DNA of 64,000 nucleotides from Macrostomum hystrix (lineage: Eukaryota > Animalia > Platyhelminthes), in contig CATNEN010000011.1 of assembly GCA_950097015.1 (NCBI GenBank), forward strand, positions 2,480,001-2,544,000, given 5' to 3'. Below the pieces are notes generated by a model. It saw nothing but the letters and a program-made list of their open reading frames with translations. It was not told the origin of the DNA and made no database searches. Numbering within the stretch: position 1 is the stretch's first letter; each line of letters starts with the position of its first letter. This document shows positions 44,801-64,000 of this stretch, piece after piece. Both the position numbers and the translations under genes were made by a program.

Positions 44801-47800
44801 AATTGGGGACTCGACAAAATGGGAACACTTTGGGAAAGGGGAGATAAGGGGAGATAAGGGGGATATTTGCAAAATAGCAGGGGTGGACAAGCGCGTCAAA
44901 GATGTCGGAACGTCTGACTTTTTCGAAGGAAAACCGAAGGGATTAAATAGGGAAAGGTCACGCATCACTCGCACGATCCGTGATAGAAAGTATCTGTTGA
45001 CCCAGCCAGCAGTGTACAACCGAGCCCTGCCGCGCTCTGATTGGCCCGACGTTGTGCAGTAATGCACAGTAAGCTTCAAGGGAGGTGGGGCGGGTGATAT
45101 TTCATAATATTTGAAATATTCATCACATTGCCACCACATCATTCACCCATCCATCCACAGTGTCTCGTTTGGAAAGCAGTTACCTGGTCTTGATTTTATA
45201 CGTTACATAACCAATTTTCCGCTCAGATAATTGTAAAGGTGACGTTAAGTTAGATCGGAATGCGATCCACGACTCATAACCCGAATCCCCAAAAACCTCA
45301 AAACTGGTAGACAGCTGGGCTTTATCGCACCGGCAGGGTCTTCTCGGAAACGTTCATTATGATCTAATTTTAGAACCAGGTATAAACTTAATTATGACAG
45401 CAAAGTCCAGCAGTAAGTTAAGTTTTTAGAGTCCAGCACTGACAATACAATGACTACTACTGAAGTACGAACTACTAGTTTGTGATTATATTGGTGTCGT
45501 AGTTCAGCACTCATCAGAATATGAGCTGCGGGGGAATTACAGTTTACAATCTTCCGAACTAATCAATGAACTCATTCACTATTTCGGCTGTGCCTTTCCG
45601 TTCTGTCGGAGTGCAGTGACAGTCCTCTCATTTAATATAACAAGCCCTAACGAAACTTTTTGACGCTCAACAGGAGCGGCGTGAAATGATGCTGGCTTTT
45701 GTTGTTTTTCCACTAGAAGAAGACTATATGTATTGGTATATATACATTGTATATATATTGTATATACATATATTGTATATACAATACAATTGTATATTGT
45801 ATATACCTTGTATATATACAATATTCACGTAAGCTCAAGCACTAATGTTACCGAATTTGTATTTAAATTCTAACTATCCAGAGTAAGTTTTAAACTAAAA
45901 TGCTCACCAACAACTTAAATACAAAAAGAACACAGTTTTGGACGGTACTTAAAACAACAATTTAACTTTTCTGGCATATGGGTTGTACTTCAAACTCCTA
46001 ATATTTTTAACCCGAAAAGCTAGAGAACTAAAACAAATGCCGTTGGCAATTTTAACCTCGAGAGCAATTTTGCGCAAAATACAGTGCAAAATATGGCCTT
46101 ATTGCAAAAAATTTCTACTTTGCATTTAAACAGAGAGAAAAGAGGGGTGATTTATTGTTGCAAGCTTTTAACTTTATAAAATTAACCCAATGAATTCTTA
46201 AATATTAGTTGTTGGTGATCGTCAATGTCAATGACATAATTTGTACGGGAAATGATTAAATATGCCGTTATTTTTCATTCATGAGTGATGAACAGAACAG
46301 CCTTTCAATTAGCCCTTTTTTGCAGTATTTCATATTATTTTTAACTTATATTTACACATGCTCTGTACTTATTACAATCCCAATTTTTTTGTAGTTTATA
46401 GCGCATCCATTGTAACTTGTTAAGTTAATTCTCACGAAAAAAAGAAATGAACAGTTGGAAATGCGAAATAGACACAAAATTGTTCAGCAGGCCTACCAAG
46501 AAGCAACTACATTATATTGTAAGCTATAATGTAGTAAAGGTATAGCTCTAAGTATTGTGCGGGGCTATTAATGACATGACACTTTATCATGCATGCTCAT
46601 GGTTCTGCTTCTAGGGTAGACATTTCATCATCTTCAAGGCGATTGGGTTGACATGTGCTGCGCATGATTGCAAGTTTACACCAACAGTCCAGTTAATTAG
46701 CAGCCACTTTAACAACCACATTGAATGATAACTAATGGTCTCATAAGATCTGATTAGTTAGGTGTAGGCCTATAAATAATTTTATGTAAAAAAAAATATA
46801 TTTTTAGTTTTTTATTTCGAATCAAGCAATTTACAAGGAGTGTTCCATAACTAGGTGCCTACTTATCCTTTTGCATGCTACTAAAGAACTACTTAACAAA
46901 TCATTAAGATCTTAGTGTCATTAGAAAGTGGCTTTATCAGTCTATATATTATTATTTTTTTAAAATGTAAAATTTAGTTCATTTTTCAAATTTTCAAATG
47001 AGGTTAGGCTAGGCCTAATTCCAATGCTTAGTCACCCACTGTCACCCATGGCCATAATGTTACAAGTAATTTTTTGGTCTGCAAAACTACAAAACCATAT
47101 CCATAAGCAAATTGAAACAAAGGATCATTTATAGGAATGTAGGATTATCAATTTGTCTACTGTAGCAATCAAACAATGGGAGAATTCCCAGTTACTATAT
47201 TCTTTCATCATTTGGATAATAGTCTAGCAAATCTGCTGCCATTGCAGGAATTTGCAGCCTCGGGTTGGAAGTGAGGTGTGGCACCCAGCAAGCAGCAAGC
47301 TTGACAAATTCTATCTTAAATAAGCATCAATGCATTATTATGCTTGGAGTATCCAGCCTGTCTACAATTTTTCAGATAGTTAGCTTACAATCCTTATCTA
47401 TTAGATCAAGAATTTGATTCCAAGAGCATCAAAGCCAGGTATACATCTGACTTAGGCCAATCTACAAATCAGTCCTCCAGGCCTCAAACTGCTCAAACCT
47501 AGCCATAGGCCTACCAGTCTTCTTGCTTACTGCACTAGCACCATGAGTGGCAAGCAGAATGAGTGGCAAGCAAGTCTATTATATTACTATAAAAAAAGAA
47601 ATAATCCCATTTGGCTTAAAAAAAAACTCGCAATTAACAGTTGCAGCAATTTTTTTCAAACAAATTGTTTAAGCCATTTAATAAGGCTTCAAATTTGATA
47701 AAGCATTTAACAGACTCCTGCCAGAGTTTAATGGCAGCTACTGCTGCCATAGACAGTTCCATTGTGTGCAGCCCTGCTACTAAAGATGAATCTGCCAACA

Positions 47801-50800
47801 CACCACAGTTCTACTTTGAGAATGGCCTGCGCAAAGTAATTATCAGAATACTTCACTTTAGTAGTATGCGAATCCGACTATTTTTTAACTATATTAATAT
47901 TTATTCATTTTAACTTTTAGGTGTATCCTTACTATTTTGTCTACACAACTTATACTAAGCAGCGATGGCTTGGCAAACGATTAAAAGATGTCATGCTGGA
48001 TGAATATCGCGGCAGCACAACTGAAGCTCTGGTAATGCTATTTGTTTGAGACATCAGATTTGTCTTTGTTGTGAAATCATTGTTGACCATTCATAAAATA
48101 CAGTTGCCTTTCCTACCCAGCTTTCTGAAGAGTTACATTCTCTTTCAAATTTAACCATAAATCTCCTTTATTAAGAATCCGATTCTCAATAATTAACTGG
48201 ATAACTGTTGAAGGTCCAGCAGCTCCGTCTAGTTAAAGGTCGGTGACCACCGAAGTTGAAGATGATGCAGGCACAATTCGGGTGACATGCTGATAAATTT
48301 TGAAGGCCGCACTGAGGCGCAGTGCTAATTCGTGTATTGGGATGTATGAAATACACTAGCGCTTATGGGAAAAATCTGATCTTCGGCCAGAAACATTGAA
48401 TATCTCGACGGTCCTAATGACTGGCGACTTGATTATTGTTTCAGAAGATGCGCAACAAAATTTGACCCGTGTTCTCGAGTTTTGTGAGCTTGAGTTACTC
48501 CATTTGGGTGCAGAAAAAATAATTGTCATGGGGGATATTCTAAGAAATATCTAATGATCGGCTTAACCAATCAGAATACTTTAAGAACGAGCTCATGAGA
48601 TTTACGCAAGGAGATTAGCAGAAAAGTTGATAATTGATAATTAATCTACAATTTTTACCAACAACTTTGTTTTAGTCAGATTCGCGACTTCAAATTGGGT
48701 CGAATCACAATTAATGGTAATGCAGCTAGTGAGAATCACGTTCTCAATCACAATGAATTTATACAGCGCAGTGTGCATAGACACGAGCTGCCTGTGCTAG
48801 GTGAGAAGCTTTGATTTATTTTATTTTACTTTTTGTGTTTAACGCAAAAATTTGGCCTGGGGGCTAATAAACTGATTAGTTATCAGATCCGTTAGTTAGG
48901 TCTGAAGGCTAATAAACTGATTAGTTATCAGATCCGTTAGTTAGGTCTGAAGGCTAATAAACTGATTAGTTATCAGATCCGTTAGTTAGGCCTGAAGGCT
49001 AATAAACTGATTAGTTATCAGATCCGTTAGTTAGGCCTGAAGGCTAATAAACTGATTAGTTATCAGATCCGTTAGTTAGGCCTGAAGGCTAATAAACTGA
49101 TTGGTTATCAGATCCGTTAGTTAGGCCTGAAGGCTAATAAACTGATTAGTTATCAGATCCGTTAGTTAGGCCTGAAGGCTAATAAACTGATTAGTTATCA
49201 GATCCGTTAGTTAGGCCTGAAGGCTAATAAACTGATTGGTTATCAGATCCGTTAGTTAGGCCTGAAGGCTAATAAACTGATTAGTTATCAGATCCGTTAG
49301 TTAGGCCTGAAGGCTAATAAACTGCTCTGATTCCAGACTCTCCAATCGACATTATCTATGAGGACAGCGAGGTTCTGGTTGTGAACAAGCCGCCCAGCCT
49401 GCCAATACATCCTTGCGGCAGGTTTAATCGCAATTCGCTGTCTTATCTATTGGAAAATGAGCACAATAAGCTCGGTTTGCACATTGTTCACAGGCTGGAT
49501 CGCATGACATCAGGTGTATTGATCATTGGCAAATCTCCCGAAAAAGCTGCGGCCCTATCTGCTTTAGTGAGAGATCGCGTTGTGCAAAAGTGGTACCTGG
49601 CCAGAGTTGATGGGAGGTGAGACCAGAGCCCGATTCTTTTTTATTTCTGAGGGTAAATGATCAGATTCTTCAACTTCAGGTATTTCTTCAGATCATTCAG
49701 CTTCAGGTCATTCTTTAGCTTCAGGTAATTCTTCAGCTTCAGGTCATTCTTCAGCTTCAGGTAATTCTTATGATTCTTTAGTTTCAGATAATTCGTCAGA
49801 TTCTTCAGCTTCAGGTAATCCTTCTGATTCTTTAGTTTCAGGTAATTCTTCAGATCCTTCAGCTTCAGGTAATTCTTCAGATCCTTCAGCTTCAGGTAAT
49901 TCTTCAGCTTCAGGTAATTCTTCAGATCCTTCAGCTTCAAGTAATTCTTCAGATCCTTCAGCTTCAGGTAATTCTTCTGATTCTTTAGTTTCAGAATTCG
50001 TCAGATTCGTCAGCTTCAGGTAATCCTTCTGATTATTCAGCTTCAGGTAATTCTTCAGATCCTTCAGCTTCAGGTAATTCTTCAGATCCTTCAGCTTCAG
50101 GTAATTCTTCAGATCCTTCAGCTTCAGGTAGTTCTTCAGATCCTTCAGCTTCAGGTAATTCTTCAGCTTCAGGTAATTCTTCAGCTTCAGGTAATTCTTC
50201 AGATCCTTCAGCTTCAGGTAATTCTTCAGATCCTTCAGCTTCAAGTAATTCTTCAGATCCTTCAGCTTCAGGTAATTCTTCTGATTCTTTAGTTTCAGAA
50301 TTCGTCAGATTCGTCAGCTTCAGGTAATCCTTCTGATTATTCAGCTTCAGGTAATTCTTCAGATCCTTCAGCTTCAGGTAATTCTTCAGATCCTTCAGCT
50401 TCAGGTAATTCTTCAGATCCTTCAGCTTCAGGTAGTTCTTCAGATCCTTTAGCTTCAGGTAATTCTTCAGCTTCAGGTAATTCTTCAGATCCTTCAGCTT
50501 CAGGTAATTCTTCAGATCCTTCAGCTTCAGGTAGTTCTTCAGATCCTTCAGCTTCAGGTAACTCTTCAGATCCTTCAGCTTCAGGTAATTCTTCAGATCC
50601 TTCAGCTTCAGGTAACTCTTCAGATTCTTCAGCTTCAGGTAGTTCTTCAGATCCTTCAGCTTCAGGTAATTCTTCAGATCCTTCAGCTTCAGGTAATTCT
50701 TCAGATCCTTCAGCTTCAGGTAGTTCTTCAGATCCTTCAGCTTCAGGTAATTCTTCAGATCCTTCAGCTTCAGGTAGTTCTTCAGATCCTTCAGCTTCAG

Positions 50801-52230
50801 GTAACTCTTCAGATCCTTCAGCTTCAGGTAATTCTTCAGATCCTTCAGCTTCAGGTAGTTCTTCAGATCCTTCAGCTTCAGGTAATTCTTCAGATCCTTC
50901 AGCTTCAGGCAATTCTTCAAATCTAAGGGAGTTATAGCATAGTGGTAAGAACTTTTGTTCCACTCTTGTCTCTTTCCTTGTGCATGACACTTTATATTGA
51001 CTAAATTAAAATAAGCCATCTTATCTTCACCTTAACATTCAGGTTTCCAGATGGCAAGAAATGTTCAGAAAGTACTTCTACAAGTGACCAAGACTCGCTT
51101 GTGGCCTGCGACCAGCCGCTTGGCCCGCTCAGCCGCAAGCTGGGGCTTCAAGCCGTGTTGCCAGAGTCAGAGGGCGGCAAGCCTAGCAAATCTCTATTCC
51201 GCCTATTGGCTTACAATGGCAGAACAAGCTTAGTGGAATGTCAACCGCTAACCGGTAGGACTCATCAACTGCGAGTCCATCTCCAGTACCTGGGACATCC
51301 TATTGCTAATGATCCGCTGTATAATAGCGACGTGTGGGGACCCGAGAAAGGGCGCGGTGGTCGGTAAGTTCCTATTTCTTTGGAATTATTTCCCATGTTT
51401 TCTATCTGAGGTTTCCATGTCTTCTATCTACGGTTTCCATGCCTTATCTAAGATTTCCATGTTTTATTTAAGATTTCCATGTCTTATCTAAGATTTCAAT
51501 GTCTTATCTAAGGTTTCCATACCTCATCTAAGGTTTCCATGTTTTCTATCTGAGGTTTCCATGTCTTCTATCTGAGGTTTCCATGTCTTATCTAAGATTT
51601 CCATGTCTTCTTCTATCTGAGGTTTCCATGTCTTCTATCTAAGATTTCCATGTCTTCTATCTAAGGTTTCCATGTCTTCTATCTGAGGTTTCCATGTGTT
51701 CTATCTGAGGTTTCCATGTCTGCTATCTGACGTTTCCATGTCTTCTATCTGAGGTTTCCATGTCTGCTATCTGACGTTTCCATGTCTTCTATCTGAGGTT
51801 TCCATGTCTGCTATCTGACGTTTCCTTGTCTTCGATCAACAGTTTTGGCAAGTCCAGAGACCAACTAGTCGAAGATCTCACCAAGCTGCACGACAGTGAG
51901 CAGTTTTTACTCAGTTTTCGCAATCAAGACGATGCAGAGTCTGCGACAGCAAGGATGATGAAGCGACCCAGGCTGGACCTAGATAGTGTTGGATCTACTT
52001 CATCGTTCAATCCGGAACTGTGGCTAACCGATCCTAATTGCGAGGACTGTCTACAGAATGCCAAGTCTGGCAGCATTGGCGTCGAGCGACCTAGTCGCTA
52101 CAGGGATCCCGGCTATAACGAACTTGTTCTATTTCTTCACGCCGCCAGATACCGAGGTCCGGAGTTCGATTACTGCGCCCCAATGCCAGCTTGGGCTGGT
52201 GATGATTTCGATTGTTCGAAATTTGTTTGA
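41875..52230 (+). CDS. RPUSD2: RluA-family pseudouridine synthase RPUSD2-like; exons 41875-41962 (tentative), 47714-47835, 47921-48031, 48680-48800, 49337-49616, 51043-51363, 51843-52230
   Basis: FYFENGLRK|[17 protein letters not shown]4-like [23 protein letters not shown], catalytic HRLDRMTSG and [24 protein letters not shown]. Junctions are phase-consistent. The core from ATG 47731 is well supported; the 41875 exon is less certain. Confidence 0.88.
42030..43670. repeat. 24-bp minisatellite (ctgtcagtgctgtgccttgataat)
   Basis: Tandem units with 23-bp variants; source of the ICQCCALI ORFs. Confidence 0.96.
43890..44400 (-). mobile_element. 3' remnant of a non-LTR retrotransposon (ORF2 C-terminal CCHC zinc knuckle)
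   Basis: [41 protein letters not shown] is the characteristic GHG...CxxC...H...CP LINE C-terminus. It appears frameshifted downstream and is followed by a short aagtcaagtaagtc tail. Confidence 0.7.
48206..48527 (+). mobile_element. Dispersed repeat related to the foldback element in the DPY30 intron
   Basis: gttgaaggtccagcagctc...gatgatgca...ggtgacatgctgataaa...actgaggcgcagtgc...ccagaaacattgaatatctc...aagatgcgcaacaaaa is collinear with the reverse complement of 19934-20263. Confidence 0.8.
48862..49323. repeat. 45-bp minisatellite in RPUSD2 intron
   Basis: ggctaataaactgattagttatcagatccgttagttaggcctgaa, about 10 copies, ending about 13 nt before the acceptor. Confidence 0.96.
49660..50920. 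repeat. 27-bp minisatellite (ttcttcagatccttcagcttcaggtaa) in RPUSD2 intron
   Basis: Tandem units with a ~304-bp block duplication; source of the EELPEAEGS / LKDLKNYLK ORFs. Confidence 0.95.
51400..51825. repeat. 22-bp minisatellite (gaggtttccatgtcttctatct) in RPUSD2 last intron
   Basis: Period of 22; fills the intron. Confidence 0.92.
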
Positions 52231-52539
52231 TTTATTATTCGATAATGGTTAGACAATATGATTAGGGATTTTTAAGATTAGGATAAATATTTTTTTTGGG
52301 ATTTAAAACAGGAAGCTTGAAGTCTTTGAGCAAATCTTTGACATTTTTTAATTTTTAGTTGTCAAATTAGGAAATGCTTTGAGACTGTTAGTCAATTGTT
52401 ATTAATCTTAAAAATAAAAGCCCGATTTGTATTGTTTGCTGGAAAATTCTTTCATTCTTTTTTATTAACTTTGCTTTTGCTTATCTTGGTTTTTGCTTAA
52501 CGTTTTGGGGTTTATGAGTGCATGAAGTTTTGAATGCTG

Positions 52540-52740
52540 ATGAATGCCTGAAGTTATAGGTGAAGGGTGCCTGAAGGTATGGCCGAAGAGTCCTATAAGT
52601 TATGGCTGAAAGGTGCCTGAAGATATAGCTAAAGAGCGCCTGAAATTTCGGCTAAGAGAACCTGAAGTTTTGGCTGAAGAGTGCCTGAAGTTATAGCTGA
52701 AGAGTGCCTGAAGTTTTAGCTGAAGAGTGCCTGAAGTTAT
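52540..52740. repeat. ~23-bp degenerate minisatellite (gagtgcctgaagttatagctgaa)
   Basis: Several tandem units between RPUSD2 and the RING gene. Confidence 0.75.
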
Positions 52741-52867
52741 GTGATATAGTTTATAGTTCATTGAGTTAGGCTTAATGATCGGCAATGAGTTCTAGACTAG
52801 AACAGATCTAATCTGAGTCAATTATTTTCCTATTCTCAATCAACTTGCAGCACTCAGTCAGTACAAA

Positions 52868-53672
52868 ATGAAACCAATGAAACGTGTCAGACGCGGCAGC
52901 GGCACTGGCGATGGCGCCTCCTACGAAGCCGTCTCGCCCTTACCGTCGCCCTCGCCCTCGCCCTCTTCAATGCCGCTACCTCATTCGCCGAATCAGTCAG
53001 CCTTCGCCGTCAGTTTGCAGCCTTCGCCGGCCGCGCCGCCTCCTCCGCCGCCTCCGTCGCCGCAACAATTGCGTCGATCTAAACGACTTCGAGCCAGGCC
53101 CAGCAGTCCCCGTCTAGACGTTCGGCACTACTGCTCATTGTGCGCTGAGAGTCTGGAGACTGGAGCCGACCTAGCCAGCCCGGACACCTGCTCCGGGCAC
53201 ACCTTTCACATGGCCTGCCTAACCGCCTGGTTAGAGACCCGGCCTACTCCCGTCTGTCCTATTGAAGTCTGCAGCCGGGCATTCGACAAAATCTGCGTCC
53301 GACGCCGGCCGGGCGGTCGAGTTCTTCAACGATTGTCGTCAGATCAAAGCTTCGCCTGTCCGATCTGCCGGGAGCCGCTCTCGGGCCAGTGCGCCAGTCC
53401 CGACTGCTGTCGGCACACATTCTGCCTGCCCTGCCTGCGTCGTTGGTCGCGAAATAGCGACGCCTGTCCGCTGGATAGGCGACGCTTCTCGGCCATCTGT
53501 TTGCTGCCCCGGGTTGGGTCGGATAGACTGCTGCGCCGTCTGCGGGTGGCTCCGCCAAGGCGACAGTCGCCTGAACCCGCGCCACCACCGCCGCCACAGC
53601 CTCCGCAGCAGCAGCAGCCGCTTCCTCCGCCACCGCCTCCTCCCCCGCCACCTCCGCCTCCATCAAATCAGT

Positions 53673-53703
<31 letters not shown>

Positions 53704-53932
53704 CCAGCAGTTTCTAGTTCAACAGCATCAGCAGCATCCACACGCCGCTGCTGCTGCAGCTGCTGCCGCCGCAGCCGCAGCCGCTGCGGTTTCTGCTCCT
53801 ACAGCAACAACCGAAGTTGTTGTTGATGTTCGAAATCTGCTGGATTATCTGCGACTAATGAGCATTAGCCGGTTAGCTGATGGTGATTACTATGGCTACT
53901 GCTTCTATTCTAGCCTGCTGCGGGTAATTTGA
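52868..53932 (+). CDS. Tandem RING-finger protein (probable E3 ligase) with polyP/polyQ/polyA tracts
   Basis: RING1: CSLC...CSGHTFHMAC...W...CPIEVC. RING2: CPICREPL...CRHTFCLPCLRRWSRNSDACPLDRRRF, resembling the PHRF1/SCAF11-type RING. GC-rich 354-aa ORF. Confidence 0.82.
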
Positions 53933-54044
53933 CTGGCTTCATCAAGTCAGTTGCCATGCAAGCGACTGTCCTCAGACTACATCCGAGTCCCGTTTAACGC
54001 TATGAACCTTACAGACTATGAGATGACTATGCAAGCCTAATAAA

Positions 54045-54460
54045 ATGGACTGCTAGCCTGGCCTCTTAGTGGATAAAGGGATAGAATGGATTGCTAGTCT
54101 AGCCTCTCGTGGATAAAGGGATAGAATGGATTGCTAGTCTAGCCTCTCAGTGGATAGCGGAATAAAATGGATTGCTAGTCTAGCCTCTCGGTGGATAGCG
54201 GAATAAAATGGATTGCTAGTCTAGCCTCTCAGTGGATAGCGGAATAAAATGGATTGCTAGTCTAGCCTCTAGTGGATAAAGGGATAGAATGGATTGCTAG
54301 TCTAGCCTCTCAGTGGATAAAGGGATAGAATGGACTGCTGCTGCATCGTTGCTCGTTGATGATGATGATGATGAGTCTAGCCTCTCAGTGAATAGCGGAA
54401 TAAAATGGATTGCTAGTCTAGCCTCTCGTGGATAAAGGGATAGAAGGGATTGCTAGTCTA
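54045..54460. repeat. 41-bp minisatellite (gcctctcagtggatagcggaataaaatggattgctagtcta)
   Basis: Period of 41 (54131 vs 54172). Confidence 0.9.
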
Positions 54461-56224
54461 TGCCAGCCGGCTTTAGCTCGTAAATGCTAATAGTTGGTTG
54501 TTGTTGGTAAATGTTGATTCTCTTCATTCCTGCCTTGATTTTTCTTACCTCGTTCAGCAGAACTTCCTATCCGCTTCCCACTGATTGTGTAATCCCATTT
54601 TCAAAGTCGTTTGCGTCTTCCTCTAGTGCGCATCGGCCTAAAACTAGAATAGTTTTTTGCTTGTTTCTGTTTTTAGCTATCCAGTTCTTTTTCTGATTTG
54701 CTATATGTTTTGGAGATCAGAATGATGTATCAGTGCCTAAAAAATTGTCTCACATTCTACCACTTTGTCTCCCAACCTACTTCCCATTCTTTCTCCCCCC
54801 TCTTTCTTCTTCCCATTTTCCCTTCTCCTCCGCCTTCTGTTTCTGGAAATCTCGTCCTAGTGCTTCCTTTTATTCATGTTACATTTTGTTATTTTGCCTT
54901 TCGAAAATTTTCACCAATTTAAACTGAACTTCTAACTGGACTAAAACTGAAATTGTGTGTTTTGTTTAATTTTGCTGCGGTAAAATAAATTCGTTAAACT
55001 TATTGATATTCAAATTTGCTTGTTTAAAGTGAAGTAAGTTTTGCTAGTGGCATTCCTTGTTTTTCAAAACTGCTTGTATTTTGTCACTTGTTTTGTTTTC
55101 TTTGTTTGTTTACTCTAACTGCTTCTTTACGCTCGTACTTTATATTAAAAAGCACTTTCAGCTTAGTTGTAGAAAATTTTTTGTTACTTTTAATTGTTAA
55201 ATAATTTTCCAACATCTACATAGCGCCATCGTTTTTATGTAGCACTTGTACATTCATATTTTGTGTTCTTAATAAAAGCTAATATTTATGAGGCGATTTT
55301 TTAATGTCTATCCTATTTTAAATTGGCGCCAAACTAGTTCGTTGGATATCAGTATAACAAGAGCGATATCGATTTATTAGAAAAAAACGAAAATATGGTT
55401 AAACTTTATTTTAAAAAGTACAGCTTGAGGTGAAAAAAAATTGAGTGAATTTCATTTAATTAAACTAAATAAAATTAATTTGTTATAAGTCGTTCTACTA
55501 GTTTGGCGCAATTTCAAATTGTTATTAGGAAATTTCTAATTAAAGAAGCTGCACATAAAAAATATACTTCAGTTTCTTTTATCTCGCACATCTGTCTAGC
55601 CAATCAAATATTTATTCATGGAATTATATTTATAATTTTTTAATTCTACATTTCTACTTGTATTTATCTAGAGAGAGGTATGTTCTGATATTCGCGAATT
55701 ATTGTACACATGCGCGATTCGGACTACTTAAACTTATTTTGTTAAGTAGCGCACTTTGGCCATATTCCATTTGTTTATTAAAATTCGTCAGTGAATATGA
55801 GGCGTACGGTTTTTTCGTGTTATTTATATTTCTGACCTCATTGCTTTTCACTAGAACAGTTAATATTAGATCTTGTACATGTTTTGAATTTTTGTAAATA
55901 TAACATTTTTTAAAATTGCTCGTTTTGTCATTTGGCTCTAATATTATAGAATGAGTATTTTTTAATCTGATTGAAAATTTGTGTGTTTTATAGACCTGAA
56001 TTTCATATTTAACATGTTTTGTTGCATTGAAACTATTAGGCAGAAAAATACCTCCCTTAAACATTTATATTTTTTAATCAAGATTCTCCTGAATTGTTTA
56101 TATGGCTCAATTGTATCCATTGACTTTTTCTGAATTTCAATTAGCTTTATTAATTACTTTTCGTTTTAAAGTGTTTACATGAGCCTATATAGCCGCAGAG
56201 AGAAATTTAGAGTTATTGATGAAA

Positions 56225-58090
56225 CTATAAGGGGGCGAGAAGCTAAAAGGGGTAGAAACTATGGGGTGGAGAGAAGCTAAGAGGGGTAGAAATAATGGGG
56301 GCGAGAAGCTAAAAGGGGTAGAAACTATGGGGAAGAGAAGCTAAGAGGGGTAGAAACAATGGGGGAGAGTAGCTAAGAGGGGTAGAAACAATCGGGGAGA
56401 GTAGCTAAGAGGGGTAGAAACAATCGGGGAGAGTAGCTAAGAGGGGTAGAAACAATCGGGGAGAGTAGCTAAGAGGGGTAGAAACAATCGGGGAGAGTAG
56501 CTAAGAGGGGTAGAAACAATCGGGGAGAGAAGCTAAGAGGGGTAGAAACTATGGGGAAGAGAAGCTAAGAGGGGTAGAAACAATGGGGGAGAGTAGCTAA
56601 GAGGGGTAGAAACAATCGGGGAGAGTAGCTAAGAGGGGTAGAAACAATCGGGGAGAGAAGCTAAGAGGGGTAGAAACAATGGAGGAAGAGAAGCTAAGAG
56701 GGGTAGAAACAATCGGGGAGAGTAGCTAAGAGGGGTAGAAACAATGGGGGAGAGTAGCTAAGAGGGGTAGAAACAATGGGGGAGAGTAGCTAAGAGGTCT
56801 AGAAACAATCGGGGAGAGAAGCTAAGAGGGGTAGAAACAATGGGGGAGAGTAGCTAAGAGGTCTAGAAACAATCGGGGAGAGAAGCTAAGAGGGGTAGAA
56901 ACAATGGGGGAGAGTAGCTAAGAGGGCTAGAAACAATCGGGGAGAGTAGCTAAGAGGGGTAGAAACAATGGGGGAGAGTAGCTAAGAGGGTTAGAAACAA
57001 TCGGGGAGAGTAGCTAAGAGGGGTAGAAACAATCGGGGAAGAGAAGCTAAGAGGGGTAGTGTGAAGTCGTGGGTTAATTGAAGAACAGAAGCAAACGCAT
57101 TGAGCAGGTTGCAGGACAGTCACAAGCGCAAACTCTAGCCGTGCACCTTCGATCAATATATATTGTGCCAGACAGGCATGATTCAGCAATCACACGAGAT
57201 AACAATAGGGTGGAGGATGGGTGGTTGTATAAGACACATCAAAGTAAATAACAGCGGCGGGGGTGGCGCGCGCGCACTTAAATAAACTGAACTATTACAA
57301 CAACGACAGTGACTGCACTAACAATTGACATAGCCCGACATCTCCCCCCTAGGCTAGAAACATCCCATCCTCGTCGCCACTGTGAAGTCGTGGGTTAATT
57401 GAAGAACAGAAGCAAACGCATTGAGCAGGTTGCAGGACAGTCACAAGCGCAAACTCTAGCCGTGCACCTTCGATCAATATATATTGTGCCAGACAGGCAT
57501 GATTCAGCAATCACACGAGATAACAATAGGGTGGAGGATGGGTGGTTGTATAAGACACATCAAAGTAAATAACAGCGGCGGGGGTGGCGCGCGCGCACTT
57601 AAATAAACTGAACTATTACAACAACGACAGTGACTGCACTAACAATTGACATAGCCCGACAGGTAGAAACAATCGGGGAGAGAAGCTAAGAGGGGTAGAA
57701 ACTATGGGGAAGAGTAGCTAAGAGGGGTAGAAACAATCGGGGAGAGAAGCTAAGAGGGGTAGAAACTATGGGGAAGAGAAGCTAAGAGGGGTAGAAACAA
57801 TGGGGTAGAGTAGCTAAGAGGGGTAGAAACAATGGGGGAGAGTAGCTAAGAGGGGTAGAAATAATGGGGGCGAGAAGCTAAAAGGGGTAGAAACTATGGG
57901 GAAGAGAAGCTAAGAGGGGTAGAAACAATTGGGGAGAGTAGCTAAGAGGGGTAGAAACAATGGGGGCAGAGAAGCTAAGAGGGGTAGAAATAATGGGGGC
58001 GAGAAGCTAAAAGGGGTAGAAACAATGGGGGCAGAGAAGCTAAGAGGGGTAGAAACAATGGGGCAGAGAAGCTATGAGGGCTAGAAACAA
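56225..58090. repeat. ~32-bp purine-rich minisatellite (gctaagaggggtagaaacaatcggggagagta), interrupted by a TRIM
   Basis: Tandem units on both sides of 57060-57661. Confidence 0.95.
57060..57661 (-). mobile_element. Terminal-repeat retrotransposon in miniature (TRIM): 281-bp LTRs, 40-bp interior
   Basis: Direct repeats 57060-57340 and 57381-57661 with TG...CA ends. PBS tggcgacgaggatgggat (57362-57379, minus strand) is complementary to the tRNA-Ser(GCT) 3' end as recalled. PPT aggggggaga (57341-57350). 5-bp TSD GGTAG at 57055-57059 and 57662-57666. Confidence 0.95.
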
Positions 58091-58629
58091 CAGACACGAA
58101 TATTATTGAAAGTAACTTCGTAATTTTTCAATTTATTATTAATCTAAAGTTTTTTAAATTCAATTATGACAGTAATCAACTGTCTATTGTGGTACTGCAA
58201 GTGTGTTTTTAGTTTAATTTTGTCAAATATTTCCCATTGTTTTGTTGTGTTCTTACCACGACTCGGATTCCTATGATTTTTTTATTTCTTGTAAATTTTT
58301 AATTTTTCAAGGTTAAATAGTTTTTGTCGATTTTGAATAGTTTGTTTGCTGGCATTACACTCTGCTTGTATATAATTGCTTTGCTGCAAGGATAAGCTAC
58401 AATGCTAACCTATTTGCTGTCTCTATTTTTATTATTGTACTCAAACATTTGTCAGAATCTTGACACCCATTCTTTTGACATAAAAAGAGGACAAGAAATT
58501 GTAATAAAGGTTTGAAATTGAATTCACACTTTTTTTCATTCATCAGTGTCTTTTATCTTTAGAGTTTTAACTTTAGACTGGTCGTCATTTCTGACAGAAA
58601 AAGTTAGATTTATGACACTTGAAGCCATT

Positions 58630-60830
58630 TTCAGACTAAGCGCCATCTCTGTCAGAATAAATGCCATTTCAAACAGACTAGAGGCCATTTCTGTAAGACT
58701 AGATGCCATTTCTGTAAGACTAGATGCCATTTATGTAAGACTAGATGCCATTTCTGAGACTAGATGCCATTTCTGAGACTAGATGCCATTTCTGAGACTA
58801 AATGCCATTTCTGAGACTAGATGACATTTCTGTAGGACTAGATGCCATTTCTGTAAGACTAGATGCCATTTCAAACAGACTAGATGCCATTTCAAACAGA
58901 CTAGATGCCATTTCAAACAGACTAGATGCCATTTCAAACAGACTAGATGCCATTTCAAACAGACTAGATGCCATTTCAAACAGACTAGATGTCATTTCTG
59001 TAAGACTAGATGCCATTTCAAACAGACTAGGTGCCATTTCAAACAGACTAGATGCCATTTCAAACAGACTAGATGCCATTTCAAACAGACTAGATGTCAT
59101 TTCTGTAAGACTAGATGCCATTTCAAACAGACTAGGTGCCATTTCAAACAGACTAGGTGCCATTTCAAACAGACTAGATGCCATTTCAAACAGACTAGAT
59201 GCCATTTCAAACAGACTAGATGCCATTTCAAACAGACTAGATGTCATTTCTGTAAGACTAGATGCCATTTCAAACAGACTAGATGCCATTTCAAACAGAC
59301 TAGATGCCATTTCAAACAGACTAGATGCCATTTCAAACAGACTAGATGCCATTTCAAACAGACTAGATGCTATTTCAAACAGACTAGATGTCATTTCTGT
59401 AAGACTAGATGCCATTTCAAACAGACTAGGTGCCATTTCAAACAGACTAGGTGCCATTTCAAACAGACTAGATGCCATTTCAAACAGACTAGATGACATT
59501 TCTGTAGGACTAGATGCCATTTCTGTAAGACTAGATGCCATTTCAAACAGACTAGATGCCATTTCAAACAGACTAGATGCCATTTCAAACAGACTAGATG
59601 TCATTTCTGTAAGACTAGATGCCATTTCAAACAGACTAGATGCCATTTCAAACAGACTAGATGTCATTTCTGTAAGACTAGATGCCATTTCAAACAGACT
59701 AGATGCCATTTCAAACAGACTAGATGCCATTTCAAACAGACTAGATGCCATTTCAAACAGACTAGATGCCATTTCAAACAGACTAGATGCCATTTCAAAC
59801 AGACTAGATGCCATTTCAAACAGACTAGATGCCATTTCAAACAGACTAGATGCCATTTCAAACAGACTAGATGCCATTTCAAACAGACTAGATGCCATTT
59901 CAAACAGACTAGATGCCATTTCAAACAGACTAGATGCCATTTCAAACAGACTAGATGCCATTTCAAACAGACTAGATGCCATTTCTGTAAGACTAGATGC
60001 CATTTCAAACAGACTAGATGCCATTTCAAACAGACTAGATGCCATTTCAAACAGACTAGATGTCATTTCTGTAAGACTAGATGCCATTTCAAACAGACTA
60101 GATGCCATTTCAAACAGACTAGATGCCATTTCTGTAAGACTAGATGCCATTTCAAACAGACTAGATGCCATTTCAAACAGACTAGATGCCATTTCAAACA
60201 GACTAGATGCCATTTCAAACAGACTAGATGCCATTTCAAACAGACTAGATGCCATTTCAAACAGACTAGATGCCATTTCAAACAGACTAGATGCCATTTC
60301 AAACAGACTAGATGCCATTTCAAACAGACTAGATGCCATTTCAAACAGACTAGATGCCATTTCAAACAGACTAGATGCCATTTCTGTAAGACTAGATGCC
60401 ATTTCAAACAGACTAGATGCCATTTCAAACAGACTAGATGCCATTTCAAACAGACTAGATGTCATTTCTGTAAGACTAGATGCCATTTCAAACAGACTAG
60501 ATGCCATTTCAAACAGACTAGATGCCATTTCTGTAAGACTAGATGTCATTTCTGTAAGACTAGATGACATTTCTGAGACTAAATGCCATTTCTGAGAATA
60601 GATGACATTTCTGTAAGACTAGATGCCATTTCAAACAGACTAGATGCCATTTCAAACAGACTAGATGCCATTTCAAACAGACTAGATGTCATTTCTGTAA
60701 GACTAGATGCCATTTCTGTAAGACTAGATGCCATTTCAAACAGACTAGATGCCATTTCTGAGACTAAATGCCATTTCTGAGACTAAATGCCATTTTTTTC
60801 TGAGACTAAATGCAATTTCTGAAAAGCTAG
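58630..60830. repeat. 21-bp minisatellite (agactagatgccatttcaaac)
   Basis: About 100 units; source of the 590-aa EMASSLF / DAISNRL ORFs. Confidence 0.97.
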
Positions 60831-60954
60831 ATGTCATTTCTGACGCATTCTCGTGGTGTTAAATAGATATTTCAAAGCAGATGCAAATGAAATTATATAT
60901 TGCAGCTTCGCAGCAGAACAAGGCCGTGATATATAATTGACTAAGCATCTAAGA

Positions 60955-63776
60955 ATGTCGCACGATGCGGCAGCCTCTGTTGATGTGTTCAGCATTCTGT
61001 CAAACGATTTGCCGCAGTTTAGCCAGTCTGTGTTGCAGCAGTTCTATCAGCGTTGCTCGGACCAGATTCTGGCTTATCAGCATCCAATCACTGGCCTGTT
61101 TCCATTGTACCCGGACTCCGATCCACCCTGCTACGCTGGTCACGTGCGGGATAACATCTACATAGCCACCAGTGTGTGGGCTCTGGCTCAGGTCTATAGG
61201 AAAACTGATCAGGACAGTGGCAGATGCTGGGAGCTGCGTCAGCGAGCGCTGAAATGCATGCGCTCGATAATGACCTTCTGGATGACCCAGACAAGCCGGC
61301 TGGAGGCGTTCAAAGATCAGCAGAGTCCCAGGCACTGTCTGCTGACAGTCTTCGATTATCGAACTGGCGCCGAACTAAATGACACCGCCTTCAAAGGCTA
61401 TCAGCATCATCAGCTGGATGCTGTGGCACTGTTTGTGCTCATGAGCATTCAGATGATTAGCTCTGGACTGGAGATTATTCACACCAAAACTGAGGTTTGT
61501 GGGGCTGGTGTTGCCTCTGGATTATTCGCGTTTGAGGCATGGTAGATGAGGATTTATGGGATTATTGTTAATGATTCATAGAATCATAGTTATGGATTCC
61601 TAGAAAAATATATGAGGATTCCACAAAAAATAGATGAGGATACCTATAATCAAAGATAAATTTTCCTAGAATCAAAGTTATCGATTCCTAGAATCACAGA
61701 TGAATATTCCTAGAATCAAAGATAAAGTTTCTTAGAATCATTGTTATCGATTCCTATAATCATAGATAAGGATTCTTAGAATCATAGATAAGGATTCTTA
61801 GAATCATAGATAAGGATTCTTAGAATCATAGATAAGAATTCCTAGAATCAAAGATAAGAATTCCTAGAATCATAGATAAGGATTCTTAGAATCATAGGTA
61901 AGGATTCCTAGAATCATAAATAAGGATAAGGATAAGGATTTCTAGGTCCATGTATCGGGATTTCTAGGTTCATATTTGGGATTTCTAGGTTCATATTCAT
62001 ATTTCTACATTGCTAGCACACCATATTAGACAGTCTTGAACCCTCACCTGACCCTATCGCATTCGCAGGTAAACGTATTCCAGAACCTCATCTTCTACCT
62101 GGAGCGGGCCTACCGCATTCCTGACTTCGGCATGTGGGAGCGCGGCACCAAGCAGAACACCGGCAGCGTGGAGCTGCACGCCAGCTCCGTCGGGTTCGCC
62201 AAAGCCGCCCTGGAAGCCGCCAACAGTTTCAACGTGTTCGGCCAGTCTGGCGATCACACCACCGTCATCCACGTTGACATCGATGCCCACTCTAGGAATC
62301 GAATCATTTTAACAAACCTGCTGCCAAGAGAGAGTGCTACCAAGGGATGCGACAGTTCGCTAATTCCCACCCTGTGCTGGCCAGGTCATGCTACTCACGA
62401 ACCGGTTAGGAGGGCCGCCCTGCAGAATGTATTTAACAGATTCCGTGGAGAATACGGCTTTAAAAGATTCTCCAGAGATGGCTACGGCAGCGCCATGGAG
62501 ACTAGTGGAGTTGGGCCGCACAGGCGAGCCCAGTATTCTCACGGCGAATTGAAGAAATTCGAACAGGTCGAATGCCAATGGCCAATTTTCTACGCCTTTC
62601 TCATCATTGAGCATTGCCTGCAGGGCGATTTCAAAATTGCCGGCGCTTATAAACGAAAACTGGACTCACTGCTGCTAGAGGCAGATTCTGGAGTACCCCT
62701 GTGAGTTGCTGAAGGAATGTAGGAATGAGGAATGTAGAGAATGGGAAGAATGTAGGAATGAATAATGTAGGATAGAGAATGGGAAGAATGTAGGATAGAG
62801 AGTGGGAAGAATGTAGCATAGAGAGTGGGAAGAATGTAGGATAGAGAGTGGGAAGAATGTAGAATAGAGAGTGGGAAGAATGTAGGATAGAGAGTGGGAA
62901 GAATGTAGGATAGAGAGTGGGAAGAATGTAGGATAGAGAATGGGAAGAATTTAGGATAGAGAATGGGAAGAATGTAAGATAGAGAGTAGGAAGAATGTAG
63001 GATAGAGAGTGGGAATAATGTAGGATAGAGAGTGGGAAGAATGTAGGATATAGAATGGGAATAATGTAGGTTAGAGAATGGAAATAATGTAGGATAGAGA
63101 GTGGGAAGAATTTAGGATAGAGAATGGGAATAATGTAAGATAGAGAGTAGGAAGAATGTAGGATAGAGAATGGGAATAATGTAGGATAGAGAGTGGGAAG
63201 AATGTAGGATAGAGAGTGGGAAGAATGTAGGATAGAGAGTGGGAAGAATGTAGGATAGAGAGTGGGAAGAATGTAGGATAGAGAGTGGGAAGAATGTAGG
63301 ATAGGTATATTGAATTGAGGTGGATGGTGCATTACATAAGAAATCATACCGCCACTGCCTGTAGCAGCCAGCCTTGGGACTCAGCATCGCCCCAGCAACA
63401 GCAGCAGCAGCAGCAGCAACGCCGCTGGATGCCGAAGTTCTACTTTGTTCCTCGCGACTATGTTCAAGAGGAGCGTGACAAACCGGGCAGCCAATCGCGT
63501 CGCTCGAATTTCGATTTGGGCGATCCGATATTTCTCTGGGGCGAATCCGTGCTACTCATAGCCGACCTCATGGAGTCCGGTTACCTCATGGCGCACGATT
63601 TGGATCTACTGCGCCGATACAAACCGTTTCACGAACGACCCTTGGATATGTCCAGGCGGGTACCGTTCGTTAACAAGCTGCAGGATCTGGTGGTACAGGT
63701 CGTGCTTATTTCCGAGTCCGTGCGATTGCAACAAATGTTGGCCACGTTTGGAGTGCAAAGTCAGACTCCTACTCAG
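60955..63776 (+). CDS. PHKB: Phosphorylase kinase regulatory subunit beta-like, 5' part; exons 60955-61494, 62069-62700, 63365-63776 (continues beyond window)
   Basis: YQHPITGLFP, MISSGLEII, FQNLIFYLERAYRIPDFGMWERGTK, DIDAHSRNR..L..LLPRES, YGFKRFSRDGY, ECQWP and VQVVLISES.RLQ..LAT.GVQ.QTP are present. MISSGL and PDFG favour the beta over the alpha subunit. Confidence 0.88.
61600..61990. repeat. 22-bp degenerate minisatellite (tagaatcatagataaggattct) in PHKB intron
   Basis: Period of 22 in the core. Confidence 0.82.
62705..63305. repeat. 23-bp minisatellite (gaatgtaggatagagagtgggaa) in PHKB intron
   Basis: Period of 23; starts just after the donor site. Confidence 0.93.
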
Positions 63777-63851
63777 GTCTGTGCTGCTTTGACTTGCATG
63801 TTTGATCCTCTGTTCACTCAGTCCATTCACGCCAGTATTAACTATTCACTC

Positions 63852-64000
63852 TAACATCCCCTATTCACTCCAGCATCCCCTATTCACTCCAACATCCCCT
63901 ATTCACTCCAACATCCCCTATTTACTCCAATATCCCCTATTCACTACAATATCCCCTATTCACTACAATAGTCCCTATTCACTACAATATTCCCTATTCA
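63852..64000. repeat. 19-bp minisatellite (catcccctattcactccaa) in PHKB intron
   Basis: Period of 19; runs off the window end. Confidence 0.88.

Follow-up and report, generated by a model that had tools for sequence, protein, structure and literature searches.

Pulsinelli and Temin, in 1991, reportedly described large deletions caused by strand-transfer errors in retroviral vectors. Defective HIV-1 proviruses have also been explained by misalignment (PMC9278108). In retroviruses the strong stop is reached after 18 nt of the tRNA, one nucleotide short of m1A58 (PMC8599865), and in Ty1 and Ty3 the strong-stop DNA that carries a tRNA tail is displaced and accumulates as a dead-end product that is not inherited (PMC5371799). 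The origins of TRIMs are still described as unclear (PMC4717578). For some TRIMs a larger related LTR element in the same genome has been proposed (PMC4717578), and the element described here shares its genome with one as well. The tapeworm TRIM known as ta-TRIM, with tRNA-Leu, an 8-nt PBS and mostly 4-bp TSDs, has lennie as its candidate partner (PMC4558846), and SMART, which measures 292 bp and has 85-bp LTRs, possesses an interior of about 122 nt (PMC3281118).

Does a flatworm element with an even shorter interior belong to the TRIMs, or is it the remnant of a longer element? It lies in the window analysed here (a stretch of 64,000 nt, C11:2480001-2544000, from a 220-Mb assembly of 42 contigs that was searched) and is 602 bp long in total, with two LTRs that enclose 40 nt. 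The initial annotation flagged it as a representative of an ultra-minimal, currently or recently mobile TRIM family, which in a flatworm would have been notable. We arrive at a different reading, to which we assign a probability of roughly 93%: as judged from its junction and its relatives, the short element would be a single-copy, internally deleted derivative of a young 4.55-kb Ty3/gypsy element.

Results

Anatomy of the short element

The LTR-40 nt-LTR element occupies positions 57060-57661 of the window. Its LTR ends read TG...CA on either strand. The 40-nt interior (57341-57380) makes sense only on the minus strand, which is therefore the strand of the element, and reads G + TGGCGACGAGGATGGGAT (18 nt) + GTTTCTAGCCT (11 nt) + AGGGGGGAGA (10 nt). 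The element has no coding capacity, as its interior specifies only M-G-C-F-stop from an ATG inside the PBS. It was ruled out as a solo LTR, given that two LTRs are present with a PBS and a PPT between them. The initial annotation had proposed an LTR-PBS-spacer-PPT-LTR anatomy with a 40-nt interior, and every one of its structural statements is correct. Likewise, the two 281-bp TG...CA LTRs that it had called identical show 0 differences over 281 nt upon pairwise alignment, which bears out the young age that it had suggested for the insertion.

Table 1. Features of the short element and of its insertion site (positions are those of the window).
Feature	Position	Strand	Basis
Insertion target: 32-bp minisatellite, left part, about 26 units	56231..57059	.	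TRF, period 32, 92% matches
Target-site duplication GGTAG, left	57055..57059	.	Read directly; one copy restores the intact repeat unit
3' LTR, 281 nt, TGTCGGG...CTTCACA on the minus strand	57060..57340	-	100% identical to 57381-57661
Polypurine tract AGGGGGGAGA, immediately 5' of the 3' LTR	57341..57350	-	As in five young full-length copies
11-nt 'spacer' GTTTCTAGCCT, which full-length copies normally carry immediately before the PPT	57351..57361	-	Alignment with both full-length interior ends
18-nt PBS TGGCGACGAGGATGGGAT; nt 1-15 family PBS, nt 16-18 GAT (57364-57362) from the interior 3' end	57362..57379	-	Exact tRNA-Ser(GCT)+CCA complement
Deletion junction; TGG (57367-57365) common to both parental sides	57362..57367	-	Alignment with full-length interior ends
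Single G between 5' LTR and PBS, as in most full-length copies	57380..57380	-	Comparison of copies
5' LTR, 281 nt	57381..57661	-	LTR alignment
Target-site duplication GGTAG, right	57662..57666	.	Read directly
Right part of the same 32-bp minisatellite, about 13 units	57662..58090	.	TRF

A young Ty3/gypsy family with the same LTRs

The genome was queried with the 602-nt element, which yielded 24 matches; all copy counts derived from this search are lower bounds. At least six LTR pairs, which account for 12 of the 24 matches, lie 4,554-4,582 bp apart (on C39, C33, C11, C2, C7 and C25; L025-L030). Apart from the short element itself, the other LTR matches among the 24 are all full-length, solo or decayed copies. 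The LTRs of five young full-length copies, and three young solo LTRs as well, are 98.6-100% identical to those of the short element. This corresponds to 0-4 differences in 281 nt; those of the five full-length copies, counted at 1-4, are each private to one copy, and the two LTRs within a young full-length element differ at 0-2 positions. The young full-length copies have their own 5-bp TSDs (GTAAC, GGTAG, GGAAG, CAAAG and GGTTC), as do at least five solo LTRs (GTAAG, CCATC, TATAG, CTAGT and AAATG), so that a TSD of 5 bp is common to the short element, five full-length copies and five solo LTRs. Some decayed copies complete the family. The sixth full-length copy, on C25, is older: it shows about 95% identity, a matching TSD is absent, and its PPT has one extra G compared to the 10 nt that are identical in the five young full-length copies.

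The full-length interior comprises about 3,994 nt and contains one long frame of 1311 codons, open in four of the six full-length copies and interrupted in the remaining two. Pfam recognises RVT_1 (residues 507-636), RT_RNaseH (724-832), Integrase_H2C2 (936-990) and rve (1008-1096) in the 1311-residue frame, as well as a weak gag-asp_proteas match (292-380) that falls below the Pfam cut-off. By this domain order, protease - RT - RNase H - integrase, the parent is classified as an autonomous 4.55-kb Ty3/gypsy element. The nearest named protein to the polyprotein is from Macrostomum lignano (74% identity), followed by 'K02A2.6-like' gypsy polyproteins of many animals at about 50%, which makes the host a macrostomid flatworm different from M. 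lignano. A 1260-residue protein with 68% identity (P0002), labelled 'transposase InsO family protein', is encoded on a 4,583-bp JGI metagenome contig; the data set is environmental, and the protein probably belongs to a retrotransposon of a related flatworm or of some other eukaryote. The initial annotation had predicted an autonomous, tRNA-Ser-primed partner elsewhere in the genome. Such a partner does exist, with the same LTRs, in at least six full-length copies of which four have an open frame, and, judged by sequence, it is the parent of the short element.

A GC-rich motif at 57263-57277 had been put forward as self-complementary and as a candidate packaging or dimerisation signal. We find an imperfect palindrome, in which only the alternating (GC)5 core is self-complementary. 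It corresponds to LTR positions 64-78 on the strand of the element and presumably lies in U3, because a TATA-like CAATATATATTG follows about 100 nt downstream. The motif varies among copies: it is partly conserved and decays in older ones without compensating changes. A role as packaging or dimerisation signal is unsupported.

The interior joins the two ends of the full-length element

Where do the 40 nt come from? The interior of full-length copies starts with G-TGGCGACGA(G/A)GATGG-CTGCGACTATTCC... and ends with ...GGATCGAC-TGG-GATGTTTCTAGCCTAGGGGGGAGA, and that of the short element is G-TGGCGACGAGGATGG-GATGTTTCTAGCCTAGGGGGGAGA. It consists of the first 16 nt and the last 27 nt of a full-length interior, which overlap in TGG, and 3,954 nt are missing. 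Both of these ends are identical between the short element and full-length copies. The match to the 5' side extends up to ...GGATGG and that to the 3' side begins with (TGG)GATGTTTC..., and the 3' parental share therefore amounts to the last 24-27 nt, depending on how the TGG is assigned. What appears to be an 18-nt PBS is thus composite: 15 nt are those of the family PBS, and the GAT stems from the far end of the interior.

Even at a tolerance of 2 mismatches, a 25-mer across the junction has no second occurrence in the 220-Mb assembly. A junction that is unique in the assembly speaks for a derivative of a deletion that happened once and against a TRIM family. The proposal of a mobile TRIM family stripped to its cis-signals therefore does not hold: the junction is single in 220 Mb, and the interior is made of two full-length ends joined together. 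The initial annotation had suggested looking for further miniature copies with distinct TSDs, whose absence would count against its view, and the genome search found none.

Other aberrant copies exist, three of which (L031, L033 and an old C1 copy) were studied within 3-kb loci. The old family member on C1 (L019/L021; C1:5356305-5358311) shows about 85% identity, roughly 2 kb of length, scattered internal deletions and a mutated PBS; in contrast to the short element, this is ordinary decay. At L031:1300-1560 (C1:22411783-22412043), a plus-strand integrase-like frame (...HLLTPPSHP) runs into the sense 18-mer of the tRNA-Ser 3' end, after which follows T + TGTTAGACC..., the reverse complement of an LTR end plus PBS. 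The L031 junction is inverted, and the integrase 'SHP' codons and the tRNA sequence overlap by up to 10 nt. L031 is possibly another aberrant product of reverse transcription anchored at the PBS.

Primer tRNA and a start codon inside the PBS

The genome contains four identical genes for tRNA-Ser(GCT), whose 3' ends read ...GGGTTCGAATCCCATCCTCGTCG and are followed by a T-run. Once CCA is added to this tRNA, its last 18 nt (A59 to A76) are complementary to the 18-mer in the short element at every position (18/18). The initial annotation had named the tRNA-Ser(GCT) 3' end as the complement of the PBS, and for this host, with its four genes, that is correct. The PBS of full-length copies matches the tRNA at 14-15 of 18 positions and has CTG at nt 16-18. 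A second tRNA-Ser variant ending in ...GCCATCCTCGTCG, which would pair over at least 16 nt with the full-length PBS, was not found in a genome pattern search. Only four genes begin with GACGAGGTGGCCGAGTGG and fold as a tRNA, all of them identical; other matches to the pattern are not tRNAs. No tRNA genes were found in the 64,000-nt window.

Why does the family PBS cease to match its primer after 15 nt? The first ATG of the full-length frame is located at PBS nt 12-14 (...GA(A/G)G ATG GCT GCG ACT..., giving MAATIPTLSANSDVEV...), for example at L028:494-496 in the full-length copy on C2. PBS nt 16-18 are accordingly coding and belong to codons 2 and 3. With the start codon placed within the PBS, nt 16-18 are constrained by coding, which is why the match ends at 15 nt; in the parent family, the same bases are claimed by coding as well as by priming. 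The arrangement recurs, with the ATG at L043:1512-1514, in a sister family whose LTR is different and whose N-terminus, MATTGRIPELSANSDI..., is homologous, and neither in L028 nor in L043 is there an untranslated leader between PBS and ORF. Two more tRNA-Ser-primed families (L041/L053/L054 and L045/L058) have TGGCGACGAGGATGG followed by C.

Within the sister family, L048 (L048:1461-1545; the same copy as L033; C7:3038385) differs from two other copies at PBS nt 16-18: in place of their CT it has a tRNA-like GAT, together with a 1-nt slip. The slip shifts the frame, which meets a stop after 12 codons, and polyprotein residues 403-891 are absent from this copy. The simplest reading of L048 is that a plus-strand strong-stop DNA with an 18-nt tRNA copy was used, extended and inherited, which suggests that tRNA tails are made in this genome. 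The frameshift and early stop imply that such tails are not tolerated in coding copies.

A mis-transferred strong-stop DNA as the probable cause

We propose that a single step, while a full-length RNA was being reverse transcribed, removed the interior. Plus-strand strong-stop DNA (U3-R-U5-TGGCGACGAGGATGGGAT-3') would end in an 18-nt copy of the tRNA-Ser primer (...GGATGGGAT). At its own PBS the last 3 nt of this tail would face CTG and be unpaired, a mismatch that arises because the start codon and the second codon overlap the PBS, and no extension would take place there. The 3' end would pair instead with the sole TGGGAT, 21 nt upstream of the PPT, and would then be extended. The complementary strand may be a nascent minus strand made from a co-packaged second RNA; alternatively, minus-strand strong-stop DNA may prime on the new plus strand. 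The resulting short LTR-40 nt-LTR cDNA would be inserted into the minisatellite by the integrase of the element, which would account for the identical LTRs and the clean 5-bp TSD.

The positions of both breakpoints are consistent with this course of events. TGG occurs 63-74 times per full-length interior. The hexamer TGGGAT, identical to the final 6 nt of the 18-nt tRNA copy, is found once per interior, as is even the shorter GGGAT, and its location is precisely the 3' breakpoint of the short element. In a scan of 3,974 interior positions against the 3' end of the 18-nt tRNA copy, this single site was the best with 6 nt, and behind it ranked 11-12 sites that match over 4 nt. As for the other breakpoint, it falls within the PBS, where agreement between the family sequence and the tRNA ends. 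Strand transfer of a tRNA-tailed plus-strand strong-stop DNA to the wrong site thus probably made the short element, though by no means certainly. From the junction we infer that the deletion occurred during reverse transcription rather than afterwards, and the same holds for the completion of the second strand; a tail length of 18 nt for the parent element is likewise what we infer from this junction together with the sister copy L048. The proposed mechanism rests on a single junction (n=1), which was picked out initially for being extreme, and it needs a minus-strand template beside the PPT at the right moment, perhaps from a second co-packaged genome. None of the six full-length copies has GAT at PBS nt 16-18, which indicates that the tRNA tail, if copied, is rarely inherited.

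Could the 3,954 nt have been lost from the same parent in a more ordinary manner, through TGG microhomology, with the 18/18 tRNA match a coincidence? We consider this possible, if doubtful. TGG is common to both sides of the junction, the locus lies in a tandem array, and internal deletions are common in the parent and sister families, as exemplified by the old C1 copy of about 2 kb and by L033, which lacks residues 403-891. The loss might have occurred by a template switch of the reverse transcriptase during minus-strand synthesis, or by a later chromosomal deletion of a full-length insertion, through slippage or end-joining in an unstable minisatellite. What stays unexplained by such a loss is a breakpoint exactly at the end of the tRNA-complementary stretch. 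Of about 64 TGG trinucleotides, moreover, a single one precedes GAT, and the other breakpoint would have to coincide with it, for which the odds are roughly 1 in 64. The ordinary deleted copies that we inspected have scattered deletions that are not anchored at the PBS. A TGG microhomology deletion yields the same sequence by any route, and from sequence alone the routes are inseparable.

Very improbable, in our judgement, is a true TRIM, in other words a non-autonomous family, reduced to cis-signals, of which the short element would be a fresh insertion and whose members would be transcribed, then packaged and copied in trans with the help of the full-length element. All structural parts are present, including a PBS better than that of the parent, identical LTRs that bear a promoter and a clean TSD, and an apparently competent helper with the same LTRs is at hand. 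Against this stand a junction found once in 220 Mb and the nature of the other matches with these LTRs, which are full-length, solo or decayed copies. In addition, the region downstream of the PBS, where much of the packaging signal of Ty1 and of retroviruses sits, is wholly missing. As for an assembly artefact, in which a full-length element or a solo LTR was mis-assembled to LTR-40 nt-LTR at a locus that is indeed repetitive (a minisatellite and a multi-copy LTR), we find it scarcely credible, as repeat collapse would join at the LTRs and leave a solo LTR instead of two unique interior sites that share 3-6 nt, and as flanks, TSD and repeat-unit phase are all coherent.

Insertion into a minisatellite

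The short element interrupts a 32-bp array of about 39 units and about 1.26 kb (TRF), and an intact 32-bp repeat unit is restored once the insert and one GGTAG are taken out. The initial annotation had described a GGTAG TSD that breaks a satellite unit; both the TSD and the interruption of the unit are confirmed, and the 'satellite' turns out to be a modest minisatellite, one of many arrays nearby. Window positions 45000-64000, and the flanks of L012, L014, L017 and L003/L007, consist of a patchwork of unrelated minisatellites with periods of 19-45. Five of 11 family insertions reside inside minisatellites: the short element, three of five solo LTRs and one of five young full-length copies. 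Targeted insertion into satellites was considered and dropped; no preference can be claimed, because tandem arrays make up roughly 40% of the region itself (an estimate from TRF). Several TSDs of the family resemble each other, with GGTAG present twice at independent sites next to GGAAG, GGTTC, GTAAC and GTAAG, a likeness that hints that the integrase may weakly prefer certain targets.

Discussion

How should the short element be filed? By its sequence relationships the correct place is with the deleted members of a young Ty3/gypsy family. It is not filed as a TRIM because TRIMs are defined by belonging to a family that is copied as a miniature, and the short element does not. Deleted copies of ordinary, recently active gypsy-type elements are commonplace; the modest value of this one lies in its junction, an unusually readable natural example of a strand-transfer error in reverse transcription. 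It hints that a single error of this type may generate a TRIM-like element in one step, a suggestion that is both concrete and testable. That we have caught the birth of a TRIM in the act, with an element whose LTR still allows transcription and which the parent family can copy in trans, is a long shot. If true, PBS-anchored strand-transfer errors would represent a general one-step route from autonomous LTR elements to TRIMs.

Like TRIMs, the short element is small and has TG...CA LTRs, a tRNA-complementary PBS, a PPT, no coding capacity and a 5-bp TSD. TRIMs, however, are multi-copy families with their own history, whereas the junction described here is single-copy, and the LTRs and interior ends of the short element are 99-100% identical to those of its parent and not diverged. 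It is unrelated to ta-TRIM in sequence features, and its 40-nt interior is shorter than the interior of about 122 nt in SMART. The parent has the domain order and approximate length (about 1,300 residues) of the single-ORF 'K02A2.6-like' Ty3/gypsy elements, whose polyprotein is wholly lost in the short element.

The internal deletions of retroviruses provide a parallel. They, too, would arise in one step, with short homology at the junction and one end fixed by the terminus of strong-stop DNA, and they are followed by normal integration, with LTRs intact. Those deletions are known from vertebrate retroviruses in culture and in patients, whereas the present case concerns a germline Ty3/gypsy copy of a flatworm, and its mechanism is read from one junction. 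For Ty3, the reported length of primer that is copied is 12 nt, as opposed to the 18 nt that the parent of the short element would copy. The findings on Ty1 and Ty3 (PMC5371799), combined with the retroviral stop at m1A58 (PMC8599865), can account for a free plus-strand strong-stop DNA with a tRNA tail. That such tailed DNA is normally a dead end and not inherited fits with the full-length copies of this family, which keep CTG at PBS nt 16-18.
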